Assembly: GCF_035594765.1 (NCBI RefSeq)
Contig: NC_085843.1
Coordinates: forward strand, 288,242,633-288,306,632
From: Anolis carolinensis
Taxonomy: Eukaryota
Direction of reading: 5' to 3'
DNA: 64,000 bases
Shown here: positions 3,966-64,000 of the stretch, piece after piece
Position numbering within the stretch: the stretch's first letter is position 1
How the letters are laid out: the number at the start of each line of letters is the position of its first letter
Notes under the pieces: model-generated
Databases searched by the model: none
Seen by the model: only the letters and a program-made list of their open reading frames with translations
Told to the model about the DNA's origin: nothing
Made by a program: the position numbers and the translations under genes

Positions 3966-5116
3966 TACAGAGATGCAAGAACAAGAAGCAGGGAAAGAGG
4001 AGTTAGTGACAAGAATAACAGGATCCTCAGTGATGTCCAAGGGATCCCGAAAAGTTAGCCTCCCAGAAGTAAGAAGACACAAGACAAAAAAGACAGGTGT
4101 GTGGATTAGGAAGAGGCCATACAGCCTGGAGACCACACAACACCCGTGATTCTCTCCATGAGCTTCCTCTCCAAAACTGGGGTGTGTGCCGAACTCCACC
4201 CCACACCCCATGCACATGCACATGCCTGGTGCTGTTGTTAAGAAGGAGTGTGACCATATTGCTGCTGCTGCATCACCCAGAAAGATTTAACAGCAGATGA
4301 CTTGTTTTGCAGAATGGACTAATCACCCTGATAATTGCACTTCATCCTGCCTCAGATGGCCTAAAATTCCAGGTGCGCAGCCAAGGGCCCGGCCAACCTG
4401 GTGCCCTAACCCTCCAGGTGAAGCCCGTTGTTGACGTGCGATGGAGAGAGATCCCAGTGGCCATCATTGGTCAAGGGCCATGCGACCCAGGCCCTGCCCT
4501 GGATGGGGTCTCATCGGACTGAGAGGTAAAGGAAAACGAGTGGGAGAGCCATGGCATGGGGACCTCACTGCAGACTGAGCCATAAAACAACAGGGTGGGG
4601 TCTCCCATTTCCCTGCAGCCCCCTTGCCCTTTGGTTCCCCTTCTCTCCTTACAGAGAATCGTACCTGCACCCTGGGCACACCTTGGCACACACTCTCCCT
4701 GGGAAGAGCGGGCAGATGGAGACGGGTGCTGGCATTCCTGGACCTGTCTGATCTCGCTTGCAGTGTGGACGGATTGATGCTGACTTCAAATGACAGCCAG
4801 GGAGGCTGAGCGCAGCACCTGATGCTTAGTTTTTGCCCATGCTGTGGGCCTGCCTGCTGATGTGTCCATCCCACCGGAGCCCCAGGGATGATCGGGGAGT
4901 CTGGTGGGACCTCTGCCCAGACAAACCCTTCTCCCGGGAGCTCCTCACGCTTGTGGGCCCCCATGGCAGCAGCAACACTGCCTGTCCTTCTGTGTATCTC
5001 AGCCCCGGGCGAGGGTCTGTGTCGTGTTTTTGTGGCAGGAGGAACATGAGAGGAAGAGAACCGTGGGGCTTGAGTGGTGTAGGAGACGGCTGAGGATGGG
5101 GCCCTGCACCTCAAAG

Positions 5117-11369: not shown

Positions 11370-12168
11370 AGAATCACAGATTCACAGAATAATAAAGTTG
11401 GAAGGGATCCCCAAGGGCCACCCAATCCAACCTTATTCTGCCAGACAGGAAAAGCACAATCAAAGCACCCCTGACAAATAGCCATTCAGCTTCTGCTTAA
11501 AAGCCTCCAAGGACGGAGCTTCCACCAGACTACTGAGGCAGAGAGTTCCACTGCTCAACATAATAATAATAATAATAATAATAATAATTTTATTTTTATA
11601 CCCCGCCTCCATCTTCCCAGGGGGCCTCGGGGTGGCTTACAGATATAAAACGAACATATAATAATATCAAATACAGAGAAACACGCAAATGAAGGCATAA
11701 AATAAAGTCACAATCATTTGTAAAACACAAGTTAAAATGCTGCGATACAATCATAAAATCAACAGCTTTTTTTAAGGTCAGGAAGTTCTTCCTAATGTTC
11801 AGGTGGAATCTCCTCTCCTGTCATTTGAACCCATGGCTCCATTTGAACCCATGGCTCCCTCTATTGGAGGGAGCAAGCTTGTTTTCTGCTGCCCTGGAGA
11901 CTAGGACATGGAACAATGGCTTCAAACTACAGGAAAGGAGATTCCACCTGAACATCAGGAAGAACTTCCTCACTGTGAGAAGGGCTGTTCGGCAGTGGAA
12001 CTCTCTCCCCGGGGCCGTGGTGGAGGCTCCTTCCTTGGAGGCTTTTAAGCAGAGGCTGGATGGCCATCTGTCGGGGGTGCTTTGAATGAGATTTCCTGCT
12101 TCTTAGCAGGGGGTTGGACTAGATGGCCCATGTGGTCTCTTCCAACTCTACTATTCTATGATTCTATG
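11370..12168. mobile_element. Cluster of CR1 LINE 3' fragments (minus 11370-11560 and 11760-11840; plus ~11860-12168) with an L2-type tail inserted at ~11561-11758
   Basis: Translation RTWNNGFKLQERRFHLNIRKNFLTVR..VRQWNSLP..VVEAPSLEAFKQRLDGHL is the CR1 ORF2 C-terminus; (ATTCTATG)n tail at ~12154-12168. Confidence 0.85.
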
Positions 12169-50989: not shown

Positions 50990-51500
50990 TCTACGTCACG
51001 CAGGCCCTTCCCCTGCCGCCCCGCTAGGGGGAGCCCAGCCTTGTCCGTGCCCTTGCTTTCTCCCGGGGACGGGGCCCTCCTGATGCTCATTGGCTGCGTG
51101 ACGGCTGGGGGCGGGGCCTCTCCCGTCGCGTCTCCAATGGCGGCTTCCTTCTCCTTTCCCTGTGGGCGGGGCCAGCAGCGGTGTCATTTTCTTGTTCGTC
51201 ATTGGCTGCACGGCGATCGGGGGGCGTGGCCTCTCCGTCGCTTCTCCAATGGCGGCGCCCTTCTCCTGGGGCTTCCCTAAACCGCGCCTTTCCCTGTGGG
51301 CGGGGCCAGCAGCGGGTTCACTTTCCCGTTCGTCATTGGCTGCACGGCGGTCGGGGGGCGTGTCCTCCCGTGGCTTCTCCAATGGCGGCGCCCTCCTCCT
51401 TGGGCTCCTCTAGGCCGCGCCTTCTCCCGGGGGCGTGTCCAGGGGCGGGGCCATTCTCATTGGCTGCGTGCGGGCGGGGGCGTGTCTCCGCTCCGTTCCA
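50990..51500 (+). promoter_or_regulatory. XXYLT1 CpG-island promoter built from four repeated CATTGG / GC-box / CCAATGGCGGC modules
   Basis: cattggctgc at ~51088, 51200, 51334, 51458; ccaATGgcggc with ATG at 51137, 51249, 51382, 51501. Confidence 0.8.
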
Positions 51501-51996
51501 ATGGCGGCCTCCTGCCTGCCGCGGCCCTGCTGGCTGTTGGCGGCGGCGTCTCTGGCGGTGGCGCTGGGGCTCTACTACGCCGGGGGCCCCTCCTCGTGGG
51601 AAGCCGCTCCTCCTCCTCCTCGTTCTCCGCCGCGGGAGCTGCACGTGGGCTCGGTGCTGGCGCGGGCGGAGGGCCGCGCGGGGCTGGTGTGGCGGGCCGG
51701 GGCGGCGCTGCGCTCGCTGGCCGGGGCGGGGGCTCCGCGCCCGGGCACCGCCCTCGTCCTCCACCTCCTCACCGACGCCCAGAGCAGGGCCGCCGCCGAG
51801 CAGCTCGCCCGCCAGGCCCTCCACGGAGCCCCCTTCCCGCACAAGGTGCGCCGCCCCCAGGGAGCATGCGCAGAGCGGGGGTCGGGGTGGGTGTGTGGGA
51901 GTGAGTGAAGGAAGGCTCGTCAGGACCCCGTTCAGAAAGATTGAGGCCTCCCGGGAGTGCCCGCTTGCCTGCTGGGATGTGACAGAGATCAGAGAC

Positions 51997-52041
<45 letters not shown>

Positions 52042-52656
52042 TTTGTCAATGTCTATTGTTTCCAAATGCCGCTGAGATCTTTTTGGCACGGCACCCAATG
52101 TGCCAATTGAAACCAGTGCAGGTGGTCCCGGTGGTGATGGGCACGCTGGGTGCCGTGCCAAAAGATCTCAGCTGGCATTTGGAAACAATAGACATTGACA
52201 AAATTACGATCTGCCAACTGCAAAAGGCCACCCTACTGGGATCTGCACACATCATCAGAAAATACATCACACAGTCCGAGACACTTGGGAAGTGTTCGAC
52301 TTGTGATTTTGTGATACGAAATCCAGCATGACTATCTTGTTTGCTGTGTCATAGTAATAATAATAATAATAATAGACATTGACAAAATTACGATCTGCCA
52401 ACTGCAAAAGGCCACCCTGCTGGGATCTGCGCGCATCATCCGAAAATGCATCACACAGTCCTAGACACTTGGGAAGTGTTTGACTTGTGATTTTGTGATA
52501 TGAAATCCAGCATATCTATCTTGTTTGCTGTGTCATAATAAAATAATAATAATAATAATAATACATCACACAGTCCTAGACACTTGGGAAGTGTTTGACT
52601 TGTGATTTTGTGATACGAAGTCCAGCATATCTATCTTGTTTGCTGTGTCATAATAA

Positions 52657-52706
<50 letters not shown>

Positions 52707-52830
52707 TAATGGGATCTGCGCGCATCATCCGAAAATGCATCACACAGTCCTAGACACTTGGGAAGTGTTTGACTTGTGATTTTGTGATATGAAATCCAGC
52801 ATATCTATCTTGTTTGCTGTGTCATAATAA

Positions 52831-52865
<35 letters not shown>

Positions 52866-53114
52866 ATCACACAGTCCTAGACACTTGGGAAGTGTTTGAC
52901 TTGTGATTTTGTGATACGAAGTCCAGCATATCTATCTTGTTTGCTGTGTCATAATAAAATAATAATAATAATAATAATAATAATTAATGATAATGGGATC
53001 TGCGCGCATCATCCGAAAATGCATCACACAGTCCTAGACACTTGGGAAGTGTTTGACTTGTGATTTTGTGATATGAAATCCAGCATATCTATCTTGTTTG
53101 CTGTGTCATAATAA

Positions 53115-53161
<47 letters not shown>

Positions 53162-53285
53162 TAATGGGATCTGCGCGCATCATCCGAAAATGCATCACAC
53201 AGTCCTAGACACTTGGGAAGTGTTTGACTTGTGATTTTGTGATATGAAATCCAGCATATCTATCTTGTTTGCTGTGTCATAATAA

Positions 53286-53320
<35 letters not shown>

Positions 53321-53789
53321 TAATGGGATCTGCGCGCATCATCCGAAAATACATCACACAGTTCTGGACACTTGGGAAGTGTTTGACTTGTGATTTTGTG
53401 ATATGAAATCCAGCATATCTATCTTGTTTGCTGTGTCATAATAAAATAATAATAATAATAATACATCACACAGTCCTAGACACTTGGGAAGTGTTTGACT
53501 TGTGATTTTGTGATACGAAGTCCAGCATATCTATCTTGTTTGCTGTGTCATAATAAAATAATAATAATAATAATAATAATAATACATCACACAGTCCTAG
53601 ACACTTGGGAAGTGTTTGACTTGTGATTTTGTGATATGAAATCCAGCATATCTATCTTGTTTGCTGTGTCATAATAAAATAATAATAATAATAATACATC
53701 ACACAGTCCTAGACACTTGGGAAGTGTTTGACTTGTGATTTTGTGATACGAAGTCCAGCATATCTATCTTGTTTGCTGTGTCATAATAA

Positions 53790-53839
<50 letters not shown>

Positions 53840-54155
53840 ATCACACAGTCCTAGACACTTGGGAAGTGTTTGACTTGTGATTTTGTGATACGAAGTCCAG
53901 CATATCTATCTTGTTTGCTGTGTCATAATATAATAATAATAATAATAATACATCACACAGTCCTAGACACTTGGGAAGTGTTCGACTTGTGATTTTGTGA
54001 TACGAAATCCAGCATATCTATCTTGTTTGCTGTGTCATAATAAAATAATAATAATAATAATACATCACACAGTCCTAGACACTTGGGAAGTGTTCGACTT
54101 GTGATTTTGTGATACGAAATCCAGCATATCTATCTTGTTTGCTGTGTCATAATAA

Positions 54156-54195
<40 letters not shown>

Positions 54196-55558
54196 GGATC
54201 TGCACGCATCATCCGAAAATACATCACACAGTTCTGGACACTTGGGAAGTGTTCGACTTGTGATTTTGTGATATGAAATCCAGCATATCTATCTTGTTTG
54301 CTGTGTCATAATAAAATAATAATAATATTGACACAACGACCTATCCAGCATATCTATCTTGTTTGCTGTGACATAATAAAATAATAATAATAATAACAAT
54401 GACACAACAACATATCCAGCATAGCTATCTTGTTTGCTGTGTCATACAATGTTGTTGTGTCAATAATAATAATAATAATTTTATTTTTATACCCCGCCTC
54501 CATCTCCTCGGGGGGACTTGGGGCAGCTTACAAATACAAAACAAACATACAATAATATCAAATACCGAAAAACGCGCAAATGAAAATTAAAAGACATAAA
54601 ATAAAGTCACAATCATTAGTAATATACAAGTTAAAACACAGCAATGAGATCATAAAATGAACTGGGCAAAAGTGCATTAAGTGAGACTTGTAAACTTGAA
54701 GGAAGTTAAAAGTGCTATAAGATCATGGGGGAGAACCTTAAAATGAGGGGTGAACCCTGAGGCTATAACAAAAAAATTAACCATGCGGATGCAACCAATC
54801 AAATAGTAACCGCTAGTGTGAGAGTTTAACATGTTTACATCTGTTAACGTTGGCTGACTTGGTCAACCTTTGGGGACCCCCCCCCCTCCCCGTTTACATT
54901 AATCAGAGACCATGGCTCTTTCTTTCCAGTTAAGGAAATGTCTACAAAGTTGTTATCTATCTATTTATTTATTTAAAATATTTATATTCTGCCCTTCTCC
55001 AAAGGTGTGAGAAGGAGCACAACATGTACGTGGCACGCATTCCATGCCGGGACATAAAATAATTGTAAATTACACAAACATTAAAAACATTAAACATTAC
55101 AATCAGTTACAGCGTTCCCTCACTTATTGCTGGGGTTAGGTTCCAGGACCCCCCGCAATAAGTGAAAATCCACAAAGTAGGGACGCTGTATTTATTTTAG
55201 TAGTTATACACTATTTTAAGTCTTTATGAGCCAATCATGTGTTGATAAATTTCCTTCTCTGTGTTGTCGAAGGCTTTCCATTATTACATTGCACTTTATT
55301 GTCCATTTTAGCTGTGAAACTACCTCTCCCCATTTCGGAATATTCTGCACTTTGGCCTAGATCTATGAATTAGTCTCCTGTTTTTAACATTTTATGCTGC
55401 ATGTTGATGTTAATGACTTTTTTATTGATGCTGATGTTTTTATTGTTGGGATAATAGTGTTATTGTTTTGTTATTGTTATTATATTGTTGTATCGGGCAA
55501 GGCCCCATGTAAGCCACCCGAGGCCCTTCGGGGAGATGGGGCGGGGTATAAAAATAAA

Positions 55559-55606
<48 letters not shown>

Positions 55607-58600: not shown

Positions 58601-61600
58601 ATGACCGAAGTGAACGCGTGGGTTCGTAGACGGAGATGCGGTCATGGAGGTAGGATGGTCCCAAACCGTTCAGGGCTTTGTAGGTAAGAACCTGCACCTT
58701 AAATTGGGCTCATTAAATTGTTCTTAGGGAAAGAAGATGCATTTTGGCGTTTTGGAAGCTTTGGTGTGTTGGCAGATGTGCAAGGAAGCCGTCTGGCCTA
58801 AGAGGAAAGATGGAGAAATGGCACCTGCGTGAATGCTGAGTAACAAAGGCCGATGCCTAAAGCAGCCTCAGGGCCATTTAGAAACCTCCAGTTTCCAAAC
58901 TTTTGGTGACCCCAGCATTGAGCAAAGGGGGCCCATCTGGGGGCTGGAGCCACACTTTGAGGTGCAGCCTCTTGGCTCCTGGAAGATGAAGCCTGAAGCA
59001 GCCGGAGGACCAGCCTTTGGGAGACTGCAGTCCCTTCTTGTCAGCCTCAGACCCTGCATCCATGCCCCCCCCCCATTGACCCTCCTTCTCTTGAACTCTG
59101 ATCCTCCAATTGACCCCTCTTCTGTTGATCTCTGAACTCCCCAATTGACCCCTCTTCTCTTGACCTCTGACCCTCCCAACGCAGGTGGTCTTCCATGACG
59201 TGGAGCCGCTGGTGGAGAGGCTGCTCCCGGTCATCGGCCCCATGCAGGAGCTCTTCAGCGCCGGCGCAGGCACCTACTACAGCGACGCCATCTTCTTCCT
59301 CTCGGTCGCCATGCACCGCATCATGCCCGCAGGTGGGTGCCTCCCCGTCCTTGGCTCAGGGATTATGGGCCCTGCCATCCAGCACGGCTCCTTTGCGGGG
59401 CTGCCGGGACCCCCTCCGCCTCTGGCATTGCCCAGGTCTGCTCTCTAAAGCTCGCTAAAGGTGTATCTCACCAAGGTATTGGTACAGTTTGTCATGTCTG
59501 AGTGGTAAGGGATCCTGGGAGCCGTAGCTTTGCGAATGGTCTTTGGCAGAGAAGGCTGAAGACCTAAAGTGTCATCTGCAGAGACCAGTGTAAACACCGC
59601 ACAAGAGAATCTATGAGTTGTTAAGCTCAAATGACCCTCTTTATGAGGTAAATTCCCAGGAAAAAACAGCAGAGTGTGTGGAAGTGTGCCTTCCAAAACA
59701 GCAGGAAACTTACGCGGAGCGAGTTTAGGAAAGCCTTTGTCTTCTGGATGGCAAAGGATCGCAAAGTCAGCTTAAAAGTTTAGAAGCATTTATTGAGGTA
59801 AAAGAAATCCATTGATGGATAGAAAAGGTTTGGAGCTGACTAGCTTATCTATGCTGGTCTAAGACAGGTAGGCTGGTGAAAATAATAAACAACTCTAGAT
59901 AGCTACATTTTGCCTATGAGAAGAGGCAAAATGCATCCCTTTTGATGTAACAAAGGGATCAGAAAGAGAATTAAGATCAGAATGGAATGGCGACCAAACT
60001 GCATGGTCTGTGCCTTTTGCTCAGGGCCATAAAAATTCCAATCTAATTGAGGAAGTTACATCAAACCCTACAAGAGGTCACATTGCTAAATAAACAAGTG
60101 AATGGGTGGATCCAAACAGAACAGGAAGAAGGAAGAAACAGCAAAGCCTATCTGGCATGCATGGGATATAGAGAGGTGTCCCTCAGTCTATTTCTATGCT
60201 TTCTATCTAATCATGGAGACTTGAGCAGTGCAGGATGACATCTCTAACAATCCCCAAAACAGTCTCTAGGTGGCGATGGGGATCGCAGTCTGGGCTTTTG
60301 GGATTGCGCAGAGCCTTGAGCCGGGCAGCCCAGGTGCGGTCGGGCTGCATTCCTTCCATGGTGTGGACATGCCGTGGGGCACACACGCAACATGAAATAA
60401 TGACGCAGCAGAAGAGTGTGAAGAGATGGCACTCTGCACATCCAAGGCCAGGCCCCTGATAGTCATAATCACGATAATACTTTATTTCTAGGCCACCCTA
60501 TCTCCCAAAAGGCTCTCAGGGCAGATCAGCAAACATTCAATTCCTCTAAAACATAACATAATAAAGCACTTCATAATAAAACAACCATATAGAGGGCATC
60601 AGAATATACTTATAAAACCACCCAAATTAGTGGCAAGGGATTTAAATATGCAGGTCCTCCCTCTTCTTCACCCCCTCCTTTACCCCCAGAGATCTCCCGG
60701 CTGATCCTGGTGGACCTGGACGTGGAGTACCGGGCCAGCATCCAGGAGCTCTTTGAGGAGTTCGACCGCTTCCCCGAAGGAGCCGTCATCGGCATCGCCC
60801 ACGAGATGCAGCCCGTCTACAGGTAGGGGACGGGGACACCCCCCCCCCCCAGATGTGGGGCTGAAGCGCTGCGAGGGGGTGCTTGTGGGCTGACTGTGTT
60901 TTCTTAACGCCTCCATCTACTCCAACCTTGGTTTTGCTCCTTGCAAAACTCACCCCGTTTCCTGTATCACACCTCTGAGATCAGATAGGTTGCCTGATAA
61001 AAATACTTCTTTCCGGTCATTTCAAACCCTTTGCCCAGACCTGCTTCCCTGTTGAGGCTGAATTGGGGGCCCCTATTTTGAGCCCCCTTGACCATCCGGC
61101 CTTCCACCCGTTCTTCCTCCACTCGGTCTTTTCACAACAGTTTCTGACATCTTTGCAATCAGAGGATCGTCTTGAGTACAATAGGCTTTCAGTCTCTGGT
61201 GGACCTGCTTCAGATGCTGCTTAGGGAATCCTCTGCCACCATCTTCCACCTGTATTGGTCATTATCTAGTACAGGCCTGGGAAAACTTGGGCTGACTGGG
61301 TGTTTTGGACCTCAACTCCATACAGGCTGTTAGGAATTGTGGGAGTTGAAGTCCAACACACCCAGACAGCCCAAGTTTGCTCATGCCTGATCTAGTGTTT
61401 TCTTCCATGCAGAGAGCAGCATCGTGGTGTCTTTGAATATGGTCTGTCCTGGTTGTTCCACTATGTGCAATATTATCCTCCGCATGAATGTCTCCTTGCA
61501 GCTTGGGCTTGCCTTCATTTTGGACTGGTGCTCCTTCCTGCATTGTTGTTGTTGTTGCTAATAAGAAGAAGAAATCATCCTTTATTTGTACCCCGCCTCC

Positions 61601-61672
61601 ATCCCCCATAGGGACTTGGGGTGGTTTACACAATGACATGCAATAGTGCCATAACATATACAATACAATACG

Positions 61673-61726
<54 letters not shown>

Positions 61727-62003
61727 CTTTATTTATATACCGCTCCATCTCCTCAAGAGGACTCAGGGTGGTTTCCAGCATGGACAAAACACTCAGTTGT
61801 CAAAATAACATACAACAGCATATATCACTCATATAGCAACGATAATATATCACTCAGAACACAATAGATAAAAACTAACATATAAAATCAATAAAAGCAA
61901 ACTCAATTAAATAGATACAGTAAAATGTGGTTGTAGCCATAATTAAAAGATCCATACAATGGTTCAGTGTCTCAACTGTAGTACCTTAAATGATGGAAGG
62001 TGC

Positions 62004-62060
<57 letters not shown>

Positions 62061-62306
62061 TGCTATCTACCTAGCAATGCGCAAGGGTACCTCCCAAGGG
62101 GTGAGCACTTGGCTTAGGAAAGCGTCTGTGCATGTTGCTAGGTAGATAGCAAGCTACCTAGCAACGCACATGGGGCACTTCCTTCAACCAGCTTGCCGGA
62201 TAATAGGGCCTCCCTATTATCCATCAGATCCGGTTATTCGACATTTGGCCCACCCATTTATGTCGAATAACCGGAACCCTACTGTATTATAATAATAATA
62301 ATAATA

Positions 62307-63141: not shown

Positions 63142-64000
63142 CTGACCCCGAGGGCAACGGGGGAGGGCAGGCGTAGGCACGGGTCAGGACGGCCCCTCCC
63201 GCCGGACACTGGCGCAGTGCAGGACAATGGGACCACCAAAGGGGCAAGCGCTTCCCCTCTCCGTCTGTCCATCCGTCCATCCGGCTGCTGGACGTCACTC
63301 CGCCAGGAAGCAGCCGTTTCCTCTGAGGAATCCTGGCAGAAAGAGAGAGAGTGGGGGGGAGGATGGTCCCCTGGGGACTACTGGGGAGGGGGACATTCTT
63401 CCTGGCGAAAGGGATGATCCACGTTCAGGGGCTTCTCTCCCAAGGGATGCCTCATGAAGCCAGCCTGGAGCTGAAGCCCCCTCCCCATACCCACCCTCTT
63501 GGCGTCCGGCTGGAGCTGGGTCTTTGGGGCCAGACTCTGAGAGAGGACAGAAGGCCGGCCTGGCAAGGAAGAGAGAGGCAGGACCACAGGCCTTTGGAGC
63601 AAACTCTGGAGCTGGAAATAAAGCATCTTTGGGCCGGTGGCCTTTGTCTTTGCGGAGGAGCCTCTTTGCCCCGCCTGCTTTGGGAGCCGGATCCCGCCTT
63701 GGACTGGTCCTCGCCCTTGGGACCAGTGGGCTGAAGCAGAGGGGTCCGCCCTGGCTCTGGGATCCCCCTAAGGGGTCGCCTTCCGCCCTGGACCCCAGAA
63801 GGGTCAGTGGGGTCAGAGGGGCCTGTCCCCTTTGGATGCCGGCCTGCGGACTCTGAGGACCCGGCTCAGAGTTCAGCAGGTGCAGAGAGGGGCCAAAGCC
63901 AAGGGGCAGGGGGCATTGTATTGTATTGTTCTGGGCATGGCCCCGTGTAAACCGCCCCGAGTCCCCGTTGGGGAGATGGTGGCGGGGTATAAATAAAGTT

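Follow-up and report, generated by a model that had tools for sequence, protein, structure and literature searches.

How does the end of a retrotransposon come to stand 17 times in a row inside a trinucleotide repeat? The question is raised by a tract in the genome of the green anole, Anolis carolinensis (assembly GCF_035594765.1, contig NC_085843.1, positions 288,242,633 to 288,306,632 of the forward strand; these 64,000 nt are referred to as the window, and positions are counted from its first letter). There, between 51997 and 54480, lie the 3' ends of a long interspersed nuclear element (LINE) that appears to be of the R4/Dong type. Both repeated insertion and local amplification have left traces in the tract. 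We consider it probable, at about 60%, that the locus is a young tandem array which arose from a few seeding insertions and was then enlarged by unequal exchange or slippage.

In a motif scan, the 15-nt hairpin core of the element (ACACTTGGGAAGTGT) occurred exactly 15 times between 52281 and 54238, always on the + strand, and was absent from the rest of the 64-kb window outside the array. The element's terminal motif, TTGTTTGCTGTG, is present 17 times within 51997-54480, and the array thus contains 17 element 3' ends. Segmentation and alignment place these units head-to-tail within ~2.5 kb, with (AAT)n between them and with 94-100% identity among units. There is one long unit (u1), one of 163 nt (u2), five of 116 nt (u4, u6, u7, u8 and u15, each beginning with GGGATCTGC), eight of 89 nt (u3, u5 and u9-u14, each beginning with CATCAC), and two ultra-short units (u16 and u17) that retain only the last ~33 nt of the element. 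Their positions are as follows.

51997-52039, + strand: left (AAT)14 tract bounding the array (sequence reading)
52040-52107, - strand: snap-back arm of u1, an inverted copy of sequence that is also found in sense at 52137-52205 (inverted-repeat search, BLAST match on the minus strand)
52108-52353, + strand: sense copy of u1, 246 nt, with the last ~52 codons of the open reading frame (ORF) and the 3' untranslated region (UTR); most private changes
52375-52537, + strand: u2, 163 nt, joined to the spacer by AATA|GACATT microhomology (segmentation)
52564-52652, + strand: u3, 89-nt class, TTTG / ACGAAG; start ambiguous by 4 nt (AATA microhomology)
52711-52826, + strand: u4, 116-nt class, AATGATAAT directly 5'
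52865-52953, + strand: u5, 89-nt class, TTTG / ACGAAG
52995-53110, + strand: u6, 116-nt class, AATGATAAT directly 5'
53166-53281, + strand: u7, 116-nt class, AATGATAAT directly 5'
53325-53440, + strand: u8, 116-nt class, AATGATAAT directly 5'; mosaic, with a TTCTGG patch common to u15
53464-53552, + strand: u9, 89-nt class, TTTG / ACGAAG
53585-53673, + strand: u10, 89-nt class, chimeric: 3' haplotype TTTG / ATGAAA, as in the 116-nt class
53697-53785, + strand: u11, 89-nt class, TTTG / ACGAAG
53839-53927, + strand: u12, 89-nt class, TTTG / ACGAAG; tail without two A of AATAAAA
53951-54039, + strand: u13, 89-nt class, TTCG / ACGAAA, the majority state of copies at other loci
54063-54151, + strand: u14, 89-nt class, identical to u13
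54195-54310, + strand: u15, 116-nt class without the AATGATAAT variant; haplotype TTCTGG, TTCG, ATGAAA
54330-54375, + strand: u16, last 33 nt of the element, with a 13-nt leader resembling an inverted element end
54397-54463, + strand: u17, ultra-short, second 3'-end subtype (CATACAATGTTGTTGTGTCA), snap-back leader
54464-54480, + strand: right (AAT)n tract

The spacer after each unit consists of 19-58 nt of (AAT)n; behind 15 of the 17 units it opens with AATAAAAT, which belongs to the element itself. Tandem Repeats Finder reported unit periods of 112-184, higher-order periods of 254-366, and a period of 65 at u16. AATA microhomology is present both at the u2 junction and at that of the 89-nt class (AATA|CATCAC), while the microhomology at the 5' junction of the 116-nt class is limited to 1 nt. 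Of the 15 core units, 14 have a TAG stop codon immediately 5' of the hairpin; in u1 it is mutated to GAG. The variable sites of the array are all common to several units and most are CpG/TpG; the variants gatatgaaat, gatacgaagt and gatacgaaat occur among the units, and gttctggaca is restricted to u8 and u15. Unit u1, which is probably the oldest, has its 246-nt sense copy behind a 68-nt inverted copy of its own interior, and the 3' end of u17 carries a 14-nt extension whose inverted complement, without mismatch, forms the unit's 5' leader.

An earlier note, made from the letters of this stretch, had described 15 units with an invariant hairpin core in four length classes, and the motif scan and segmentation agree. 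Its AATA microhomologies and diagnostic variants are likewise as described. The count of 15 is correct for units with the hairpin core and falls short for 3' ends as a whole, as u16 and u17 were overlooked; the unit of ~250 bp exists as a long unit, but one made of the sense and inverted copies of u1. The same note likened the array to clustered regularly interspaced short palindromic repeats (CRISPR), a resemblance that is visual only: every spacer is (AAT)n, and what is repeated is the 3' end of a LINE in an animal genome. We rejected a CRISPR array, as the unique, non-repetitive spacers of similar length found in a prokaryote are lacking.

The identity of the element was established through the longest unit, which encodes the 54-aa tail of an ORF (VVPVVMGTLGAVPKDL...RKYITQS). 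Though this tail has no Pfam match of its own, a HMMER scan of 1.84 billion representatives matched it to the C-termini of 131 proteins. The closest of these are ORF fragments of 79-91% identity, those at 87-91% being encoded in assembly GCA_035594765.1; full-length ORFs (1110 and 1138 aa) are found in two matches that are more distant. The order of Pfam domains in the matched proteins is RVT_1, zf-RVT and then a weak match to the PD-(D/E)xK nuclease family, and no APE endonuclease domain was found with Pfam in the two full-length relatives. Alignment shows no variation in the CCHC knuckle or in a PD...D...K...KY motif, and the nearest PDB relatives are R2 proteins (5e-21), with L1 ORF2 at 1e-10. 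The unit thus comprises the end of the ORF and the 3' UTR of a LINE whose architecture, as judged from its protein relatives, is that of the restriction-like endonuclease (RLE) type; the window itself carries only the last ~52 codons. The name R4/Dong was reached by elimination: R4, counted among the RLE clades (PMC4640811), is one of five LINE clades in the green anole, where it is active and still polymorphic (PMC5389967), and it is the sole RLE-type clade of the five. TAA microsatellites are a known target of Dong elements (PMC3812793).

For comparison, we used ten 3'-end copies from fetched loci of the same assembly (labelled L001, L002 and L004). In the window and the fetched loci alike, the 5' end of the element is absent. 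The (AAT)n repeat adjoins the 3' end of all 17 units and of copies in L001 and L004; among the ten outside copies the one exception, at L002, ends in (GAA)n, and one L004 unit is preceded by (CAA)n. The protein matches, the domains and these (AAT)n ends elsewhere support the earlier view that the core comes from an RLE-type LINE, of which it is the 3' end, and that this LINE is associated with (TAA)n.

That the locus received more than one insertion is evident from its 5' ends. Five incompatible 5' structures are present (u1, u2, the 116-nt class, the 89-nt class and u16/u17), and simple tandem duplication cannot turn any one of them into another; serial insertion therefore did take place, four to five times at the least. 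Together with two snap-back inversions, identified in u1 and u17 by an inverted-repeat search, and two 3'-end subtypes, these structures support at least two independent insertions at one target, and we conclude that the locus was seeded by no fewer than four to five separate events of reverse transcription. Snap-back, in which the 3' end of the cDNA primes on the cDNA itself, is a junction class of R2-protein insertion in cells, and the same study reports tandem junctions as well as jumps of the enzyme to additional 3' UTR RNAs (PMC11371274). Each copy bears its own AATAAA-(AAT)n tail, so that each insertion renews the target, as had been proposed.

Most of the 17 units, however, come from local duplication rather than from serial insertion. 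Four of the five units of 116 nt have one and the same interrupted spacer at their 5' junction, AATGATAAT|GGG. Because the microhomology at this junction is only 1 nt, five independent truncations at the same base are implausible, and because a new insertion would not bring the upstream G along, the sharing of AATGATAAT counts in favour of duplication. The longest exact repeats in the array measure 218 nt (53367-53584 = 53600-53817) and 204 nt (52660-52863 = 53115-53318); the first takes in the 3' part of a unit, all 23 nt of the spacer behind it, a second unit, and then 32 nt of the spacer after that. Unit u10 combines a short-class 5' end with a long-class 3' haplotype, and u8 mixes the u4 type with the u15 type in a mosaic. 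No private substitution is found in u2-u15 (14 x 89 nt), compared with at least one in 9 of the 10 copies at other loci. The divergence of u1 clearly exceeds that of u2-u15. The derived TTTG state occurs in 11 units that form one contiguous block, u2-u12 (P = 0.004). By a hand count, identical unit types are adjacent three times against about 1.9 expected, which is not significant. The previously suggested picture of a self-feeding trap that was further amplified is therefore right in that both processes are seen, with the amendment that amplification accounts for most of the units.

From these observations we infer amplification at the level of DNA and a plausible order of events. The starting point would have been the (ATT)n tail of an unrelated retroposon on the minus strand. 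Four to five or more target-primed reverse-transcription events would have landed in this tail, leaving u1, u2, a 116-nt founder, one or more 89-nt founders, and u16/u17; u1 would have acquired its 5' inversion by snap-back, and u16/u17, likewise with snap-back, would derive from another source that differed in its 3' end. The 5' ends may have been joined to the upstream repeat by short microhomology (AATA), with the AATAAA-(AAT)n tail of each copy providing a renewed target for the next insertion. Unequal exchange or replication slippage would then have multiplied the units, with breakpoints mainly in the (AAT)n spacers and sometimes inside units. Such exchange would copy units and junctions intact, alter spacer lengths, and yield chimeric units; breakpoints in long, perfect (AAT)n spacers would explain why spacer lengths differ while units and junctions are intact.

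Could insertion alone have built the array? If so, nearly every unit would be a separate event, with its 5' end set by microhomology or by the base of a stem-loop, and with templates drawn from a few source subfamilies. An active, polymorphic R4 clade in the green anole (PMC5389967) is compatible with such a history, as is the start of the 89-nt class exactly at the 5' base of the first predicted stem-loop of the 3' UTR. A solo short unit at L004 6095-6002 has the same AATA|CATCAC junction as the eight 89-nt units, indicating that this junction forms repeatedly and independently. The tree gave a similar signal: monophyly of the units was rejected on all 89 columns, with p-AU values of 0.007 for all units and 0.001 for u2-u15. 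When two CpG columns were dropped, however, p rose to 0.46 for u2-u15 and to 0.05 with u1 included. The tree check proposed in the earlier note thus rejects strict monophyly on the full alignment and loses that result for u2-u15 without these columns; as the rejection rests wholly on two hypermutable CpG columns, we treated the tree as uninformative. Serial insertion also fails to account for the five 116-nt units at a 1-nt microhomology, four of them with a AATGATAAT that a new insertion does not carry, for exact repeats of 204-218 nt that take in whole spacers of identical length, or for the confinement of derived states to one contiguous block. We consider insertion alone an unlikely origin for the array.

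Several points nonetheless weigh against seeding followed by amplification. The TTTG + ATGAAA haplotype is also present at L004 21335-21265, which points either to a second, separate decay of both CpGs or to a source subfamily, and some of the variants that look specific to the array may be markers of such a subfamily rather than of descent in place. As the 89-nt junction arises independently, the shared truncation point is no proof of duplication in that class. The outgroups comprise only 10 copies from three other loci. Unequal exchange and retro-copying with ends annealed in the AAT repeats would leave patterns that cannot be told apart from sequence alone. Finally, the unit count rests on the assembly. 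Units of 94-100% identity are the kind of sequence in which mis-assembly of near-identical reads could inflate a short array, but neither the lengths of the spacers nor the order of the units follows a regular period, unlike those of a collapsed or expanded repeat, a single long read easily spans 2.5 kb, and similar arrays are present at other loci of an independent record. An assembly artefact is accordingly very improbable.

These other loci indicate that array formation is a habit of the Dong-type family. At L001 35516-36021, a long copy and a 242-nt copy form a two-unit tandem with only (AAT)4 between them, and L004 11185-11825 contains a four-unit array in which a long copy is followed by two units of 81 nt and one of 71 nt. 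Both 81-nt units have an AATA|GTCATAG junction, yet they differ at no fewer than six sites. Among the arrays seen, that of 17 units is the largest, the others being these smaller ones elsewhere in the genome. The solo unit at L004 6095-6002 ends in the CATAC.ATGTTGTTGTGTCA subtype, as does u17 (second 3' subtype, CATACAATGTTG...), with the extension at L004 6020-5990. Since this 3'-end subtype exists at an independent locus, the source of u17 differed from that of u2-u15.

Whether the array could also feed itself through RNA depends in part on the integrity of its 3' UTRs. The predicted 3' UTR fold comprises an extended stem-loop with the invariant hairpin at its tip and a second stem (z = -2.4). 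Five related elements, of which four come from other assemblies, keep this fold, with changes that are mostly one-sided. Across six related 3' UTRs, covariation in the hairpin amounts to one compensatory pair only, so the stem-loop is conserved and not proven by covariation. As the 89-nt class starts at the base of the stem-loop, all units of at least 89 nt keep the whole 3' UTR and both predicted stems. If R4/Dong protein copied units of the intron transcript in trans and the cDNA re-entered the same tract with AAT-annealed ends, the duplications would be retro-duplications, and the 89-nt unit would represent a minimal non-autonomous template. Up to 15 sense 3' UTRs with (UAA)n tails might then act as trans templates, possibly giving rise to 89-nt mini-elements elsewhere, a proposal we think improbable. 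It would fit the sense orientation of the units relative to the upstream ORF described below, and copying through a junction into the upstream spacer would take AATGATAAT along. Precedents are the known non-autonomous derivatives of R2 (SIDEs; PMC3414825), and the transposition of composite cassettes proposed for MoTeR (10.1101/845669). An RNA step is not required, however, as unequal exchange gives the same patterns. Moreover, the single dispersed short unit among only 10 outside copies (L004 6095-6002) shares its start with the 89-nt class but bears the family-majority haplotype and none of the array's variants. RNA-level amplification within the tract therefore seems unlikely to us as well, and the role of decoy or trans-mobilised template that the earlier note considered for the sense copies is speculation. 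If it did occur, the intron of a host gene would be the source locus of a SIDE-like non-autonomous element.

The relatives from other assemblies (L005 11076-11360, L006 10516-10880, L007 10964-11240 and L003 17067-17311) have 3' ends of 75-79% identity and keep the arrangement of stop codon plus hairpin; L003 continues into an N gap. Their simple-repeat tails differ, being (CAA)n, (GAT)n that passes into (AAT)n, or (AATA)n. A microRNA reading of the u1 foldback (52058-52186) was rejected as a generic long-hairpin match, its RF03632 score of 50 bits comparing with a gathering score of 107, and Rfam matches on AAT tracts were rejected as noise.

Template switching offers another route to a multi-unit insert, in which the reverse transcriptase jumps to the (UAA)n tail of the next RNA and lays down a concatemer in one or a few events, to be altered later by mutation and exchange. 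R2 proteins jump to further 3' UTR RNAs and produce head-to-tail junctions in cells (PMC11371274), the snap-backs of u1 and u17 show that template switching took place here, and the two- and four-unit arrays at other loci are of a suitable form. Nevertheless, a concatemer would need added unequal exchange to explain the shared spacer interruption, the multi-unit repeats and the chimeric unit, and it sits poorly with the greater divergence of u1 relative to u2-u15 and the different 3'-end subtype of u17. We regard this origin as unlikely, and retain a few seeding insertions followed by DNA-level exchange as the preferred reading.

The original target microsatellite probably survives at the right edge of the array.

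54480-54662, - strand: 3' end of a different retroposon family, whose (ATT)n tail is the probable original target microsatellite

On the + strand this neighbouring family starts TTTATTTATAyCCCGCC.CCATCTCC, and its minus-strand (ATT)n tail reads as (AAT)n. Further copies in the window are located at 11589-11763, 55508-55606 (+), 61578-61640, 61725-61800 and 63946-63993; at 11562-11763 the family follows an uninterrupted (AAT)9. It also flanks Dong-type copies in L002 (about 4300-4700) and L004 (about 11850-11950). Copies adjoin (AAT)n, (ATT)n or (GAA)n, which, read on the family's own strand, describes a retroposon with a variable trinucleotide tail. The Dong-type element seems to exploit these microsatellite tails, which look like a favoured landing site.

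Elsewhere in the window, 228 nt at 62061-62288, between (AAT)18 and (AAT)6(ATT)10, consist of several near-perfect hairpins (minimum free energy -108 kcal/mol). This sequence looks like another insertion into an AAT microsatellite, and no second copy of it was found in the window or the fetched loci.

The array appears to lie in the first intron of a host gene.

51435-51847, + strand: putative first coding exon, an ORF (51435-51908) ending at a GT donor (AAG|GTGCGC at 51847/8)

The donor is 150 bp upstream of the array, and the units are in sense relative to this ORF. PDB, Pfam and Atlas searches gave no family identification for 51435-51847, and the name XXYLT1, which the gene had been given earlier, is unconfirmed. 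The first 2.6 kb of the putative intron contain 14 sense AATAAA signals, which could matter for the host transcript. A GC-rich tandem repeat (51153-51449; period 134, 2.2 copies, 86% match) lies upstream of the putative first exon and slightly overlaps it.

How does the locus compare with known systems? With the Dong/R4 elements (Dong of Bombyx mori, DongAg, DongBg and the R4 of A. carolinensis) it shares RLE architecture, an association with (TAA)n (PMC3812793) and a 3' end that runs into the repeat; here, by contrast, only the last 33-246 nt are present, 17 times over, and the family includes copies that end in (GAA)n or adjoin (CAA)n. A double insertion at one target followed by unequal exchange is a described route from transposable element (TE) to satellite (McGurk & Barbash, 10.1101/158386). 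The TE dimers of that study involve a strong target preference and a second insertion that does not consume the target, and distinct 5' truncations mark separate insertions; the R1 array of Drosophila melanogaster, which it cites, reflects the same kind of process. Copying in blocks is equally apparent in the present array, from AATGATAAT at four junctions, the 218- and 204-nt repeats, the periods of 254-366 and the chimeric u10. The differences from TE dimers and R1 are a microsatellite target regenerated by the element, units of 33-163 nt, a vertebrate host, and a location in an intron.

Similar arrays have been described for MoTeR at the telomeres of Magnaporthe oryzae, also of RLE type and directed at a simple repeat, where full and truncated copies stand head-to-tail with short tracts of the target repeat between them; their repeating patterns, identical truncation points and interstitial repeats were explained by recombination-based amplification (10.1101/845669). 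MoTeR is telomeric and subject to break-induced replication, whereas the anole array is interstitial, with no chromosome end. Of the R2 junction classes (join, snap-back, tandem and template jump; PMC11371274), u1 and u17 represent snap-backs and the truncated units represent microhomology joins. Those junctions were made by engineered R2 proteins at rDNA, while ours are natural relics of another RLE lineage in a microsatellite; microhomology joins and cDNA snap-backs have so far been known mainly from R2 biochemistry.

The locus is thus no new kind of system, and the route from jumping gene to satellite was already known. It provides a clean natural record, in a vertebrate, of a microsatellite-targeting LINE turning a simple repeat into a complex tandem repeat, with three processes legible in one 2.5-kb sequence: target-renewing insertions, the signatures of the enzyme, and amplification with homogenisation by unequal exchange. 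What is particular here, when set beside these systems, is the combination of a self-regenerated microsatellite target, very short units, a vertebrate intronic setting, and mixed enzyme signatures.

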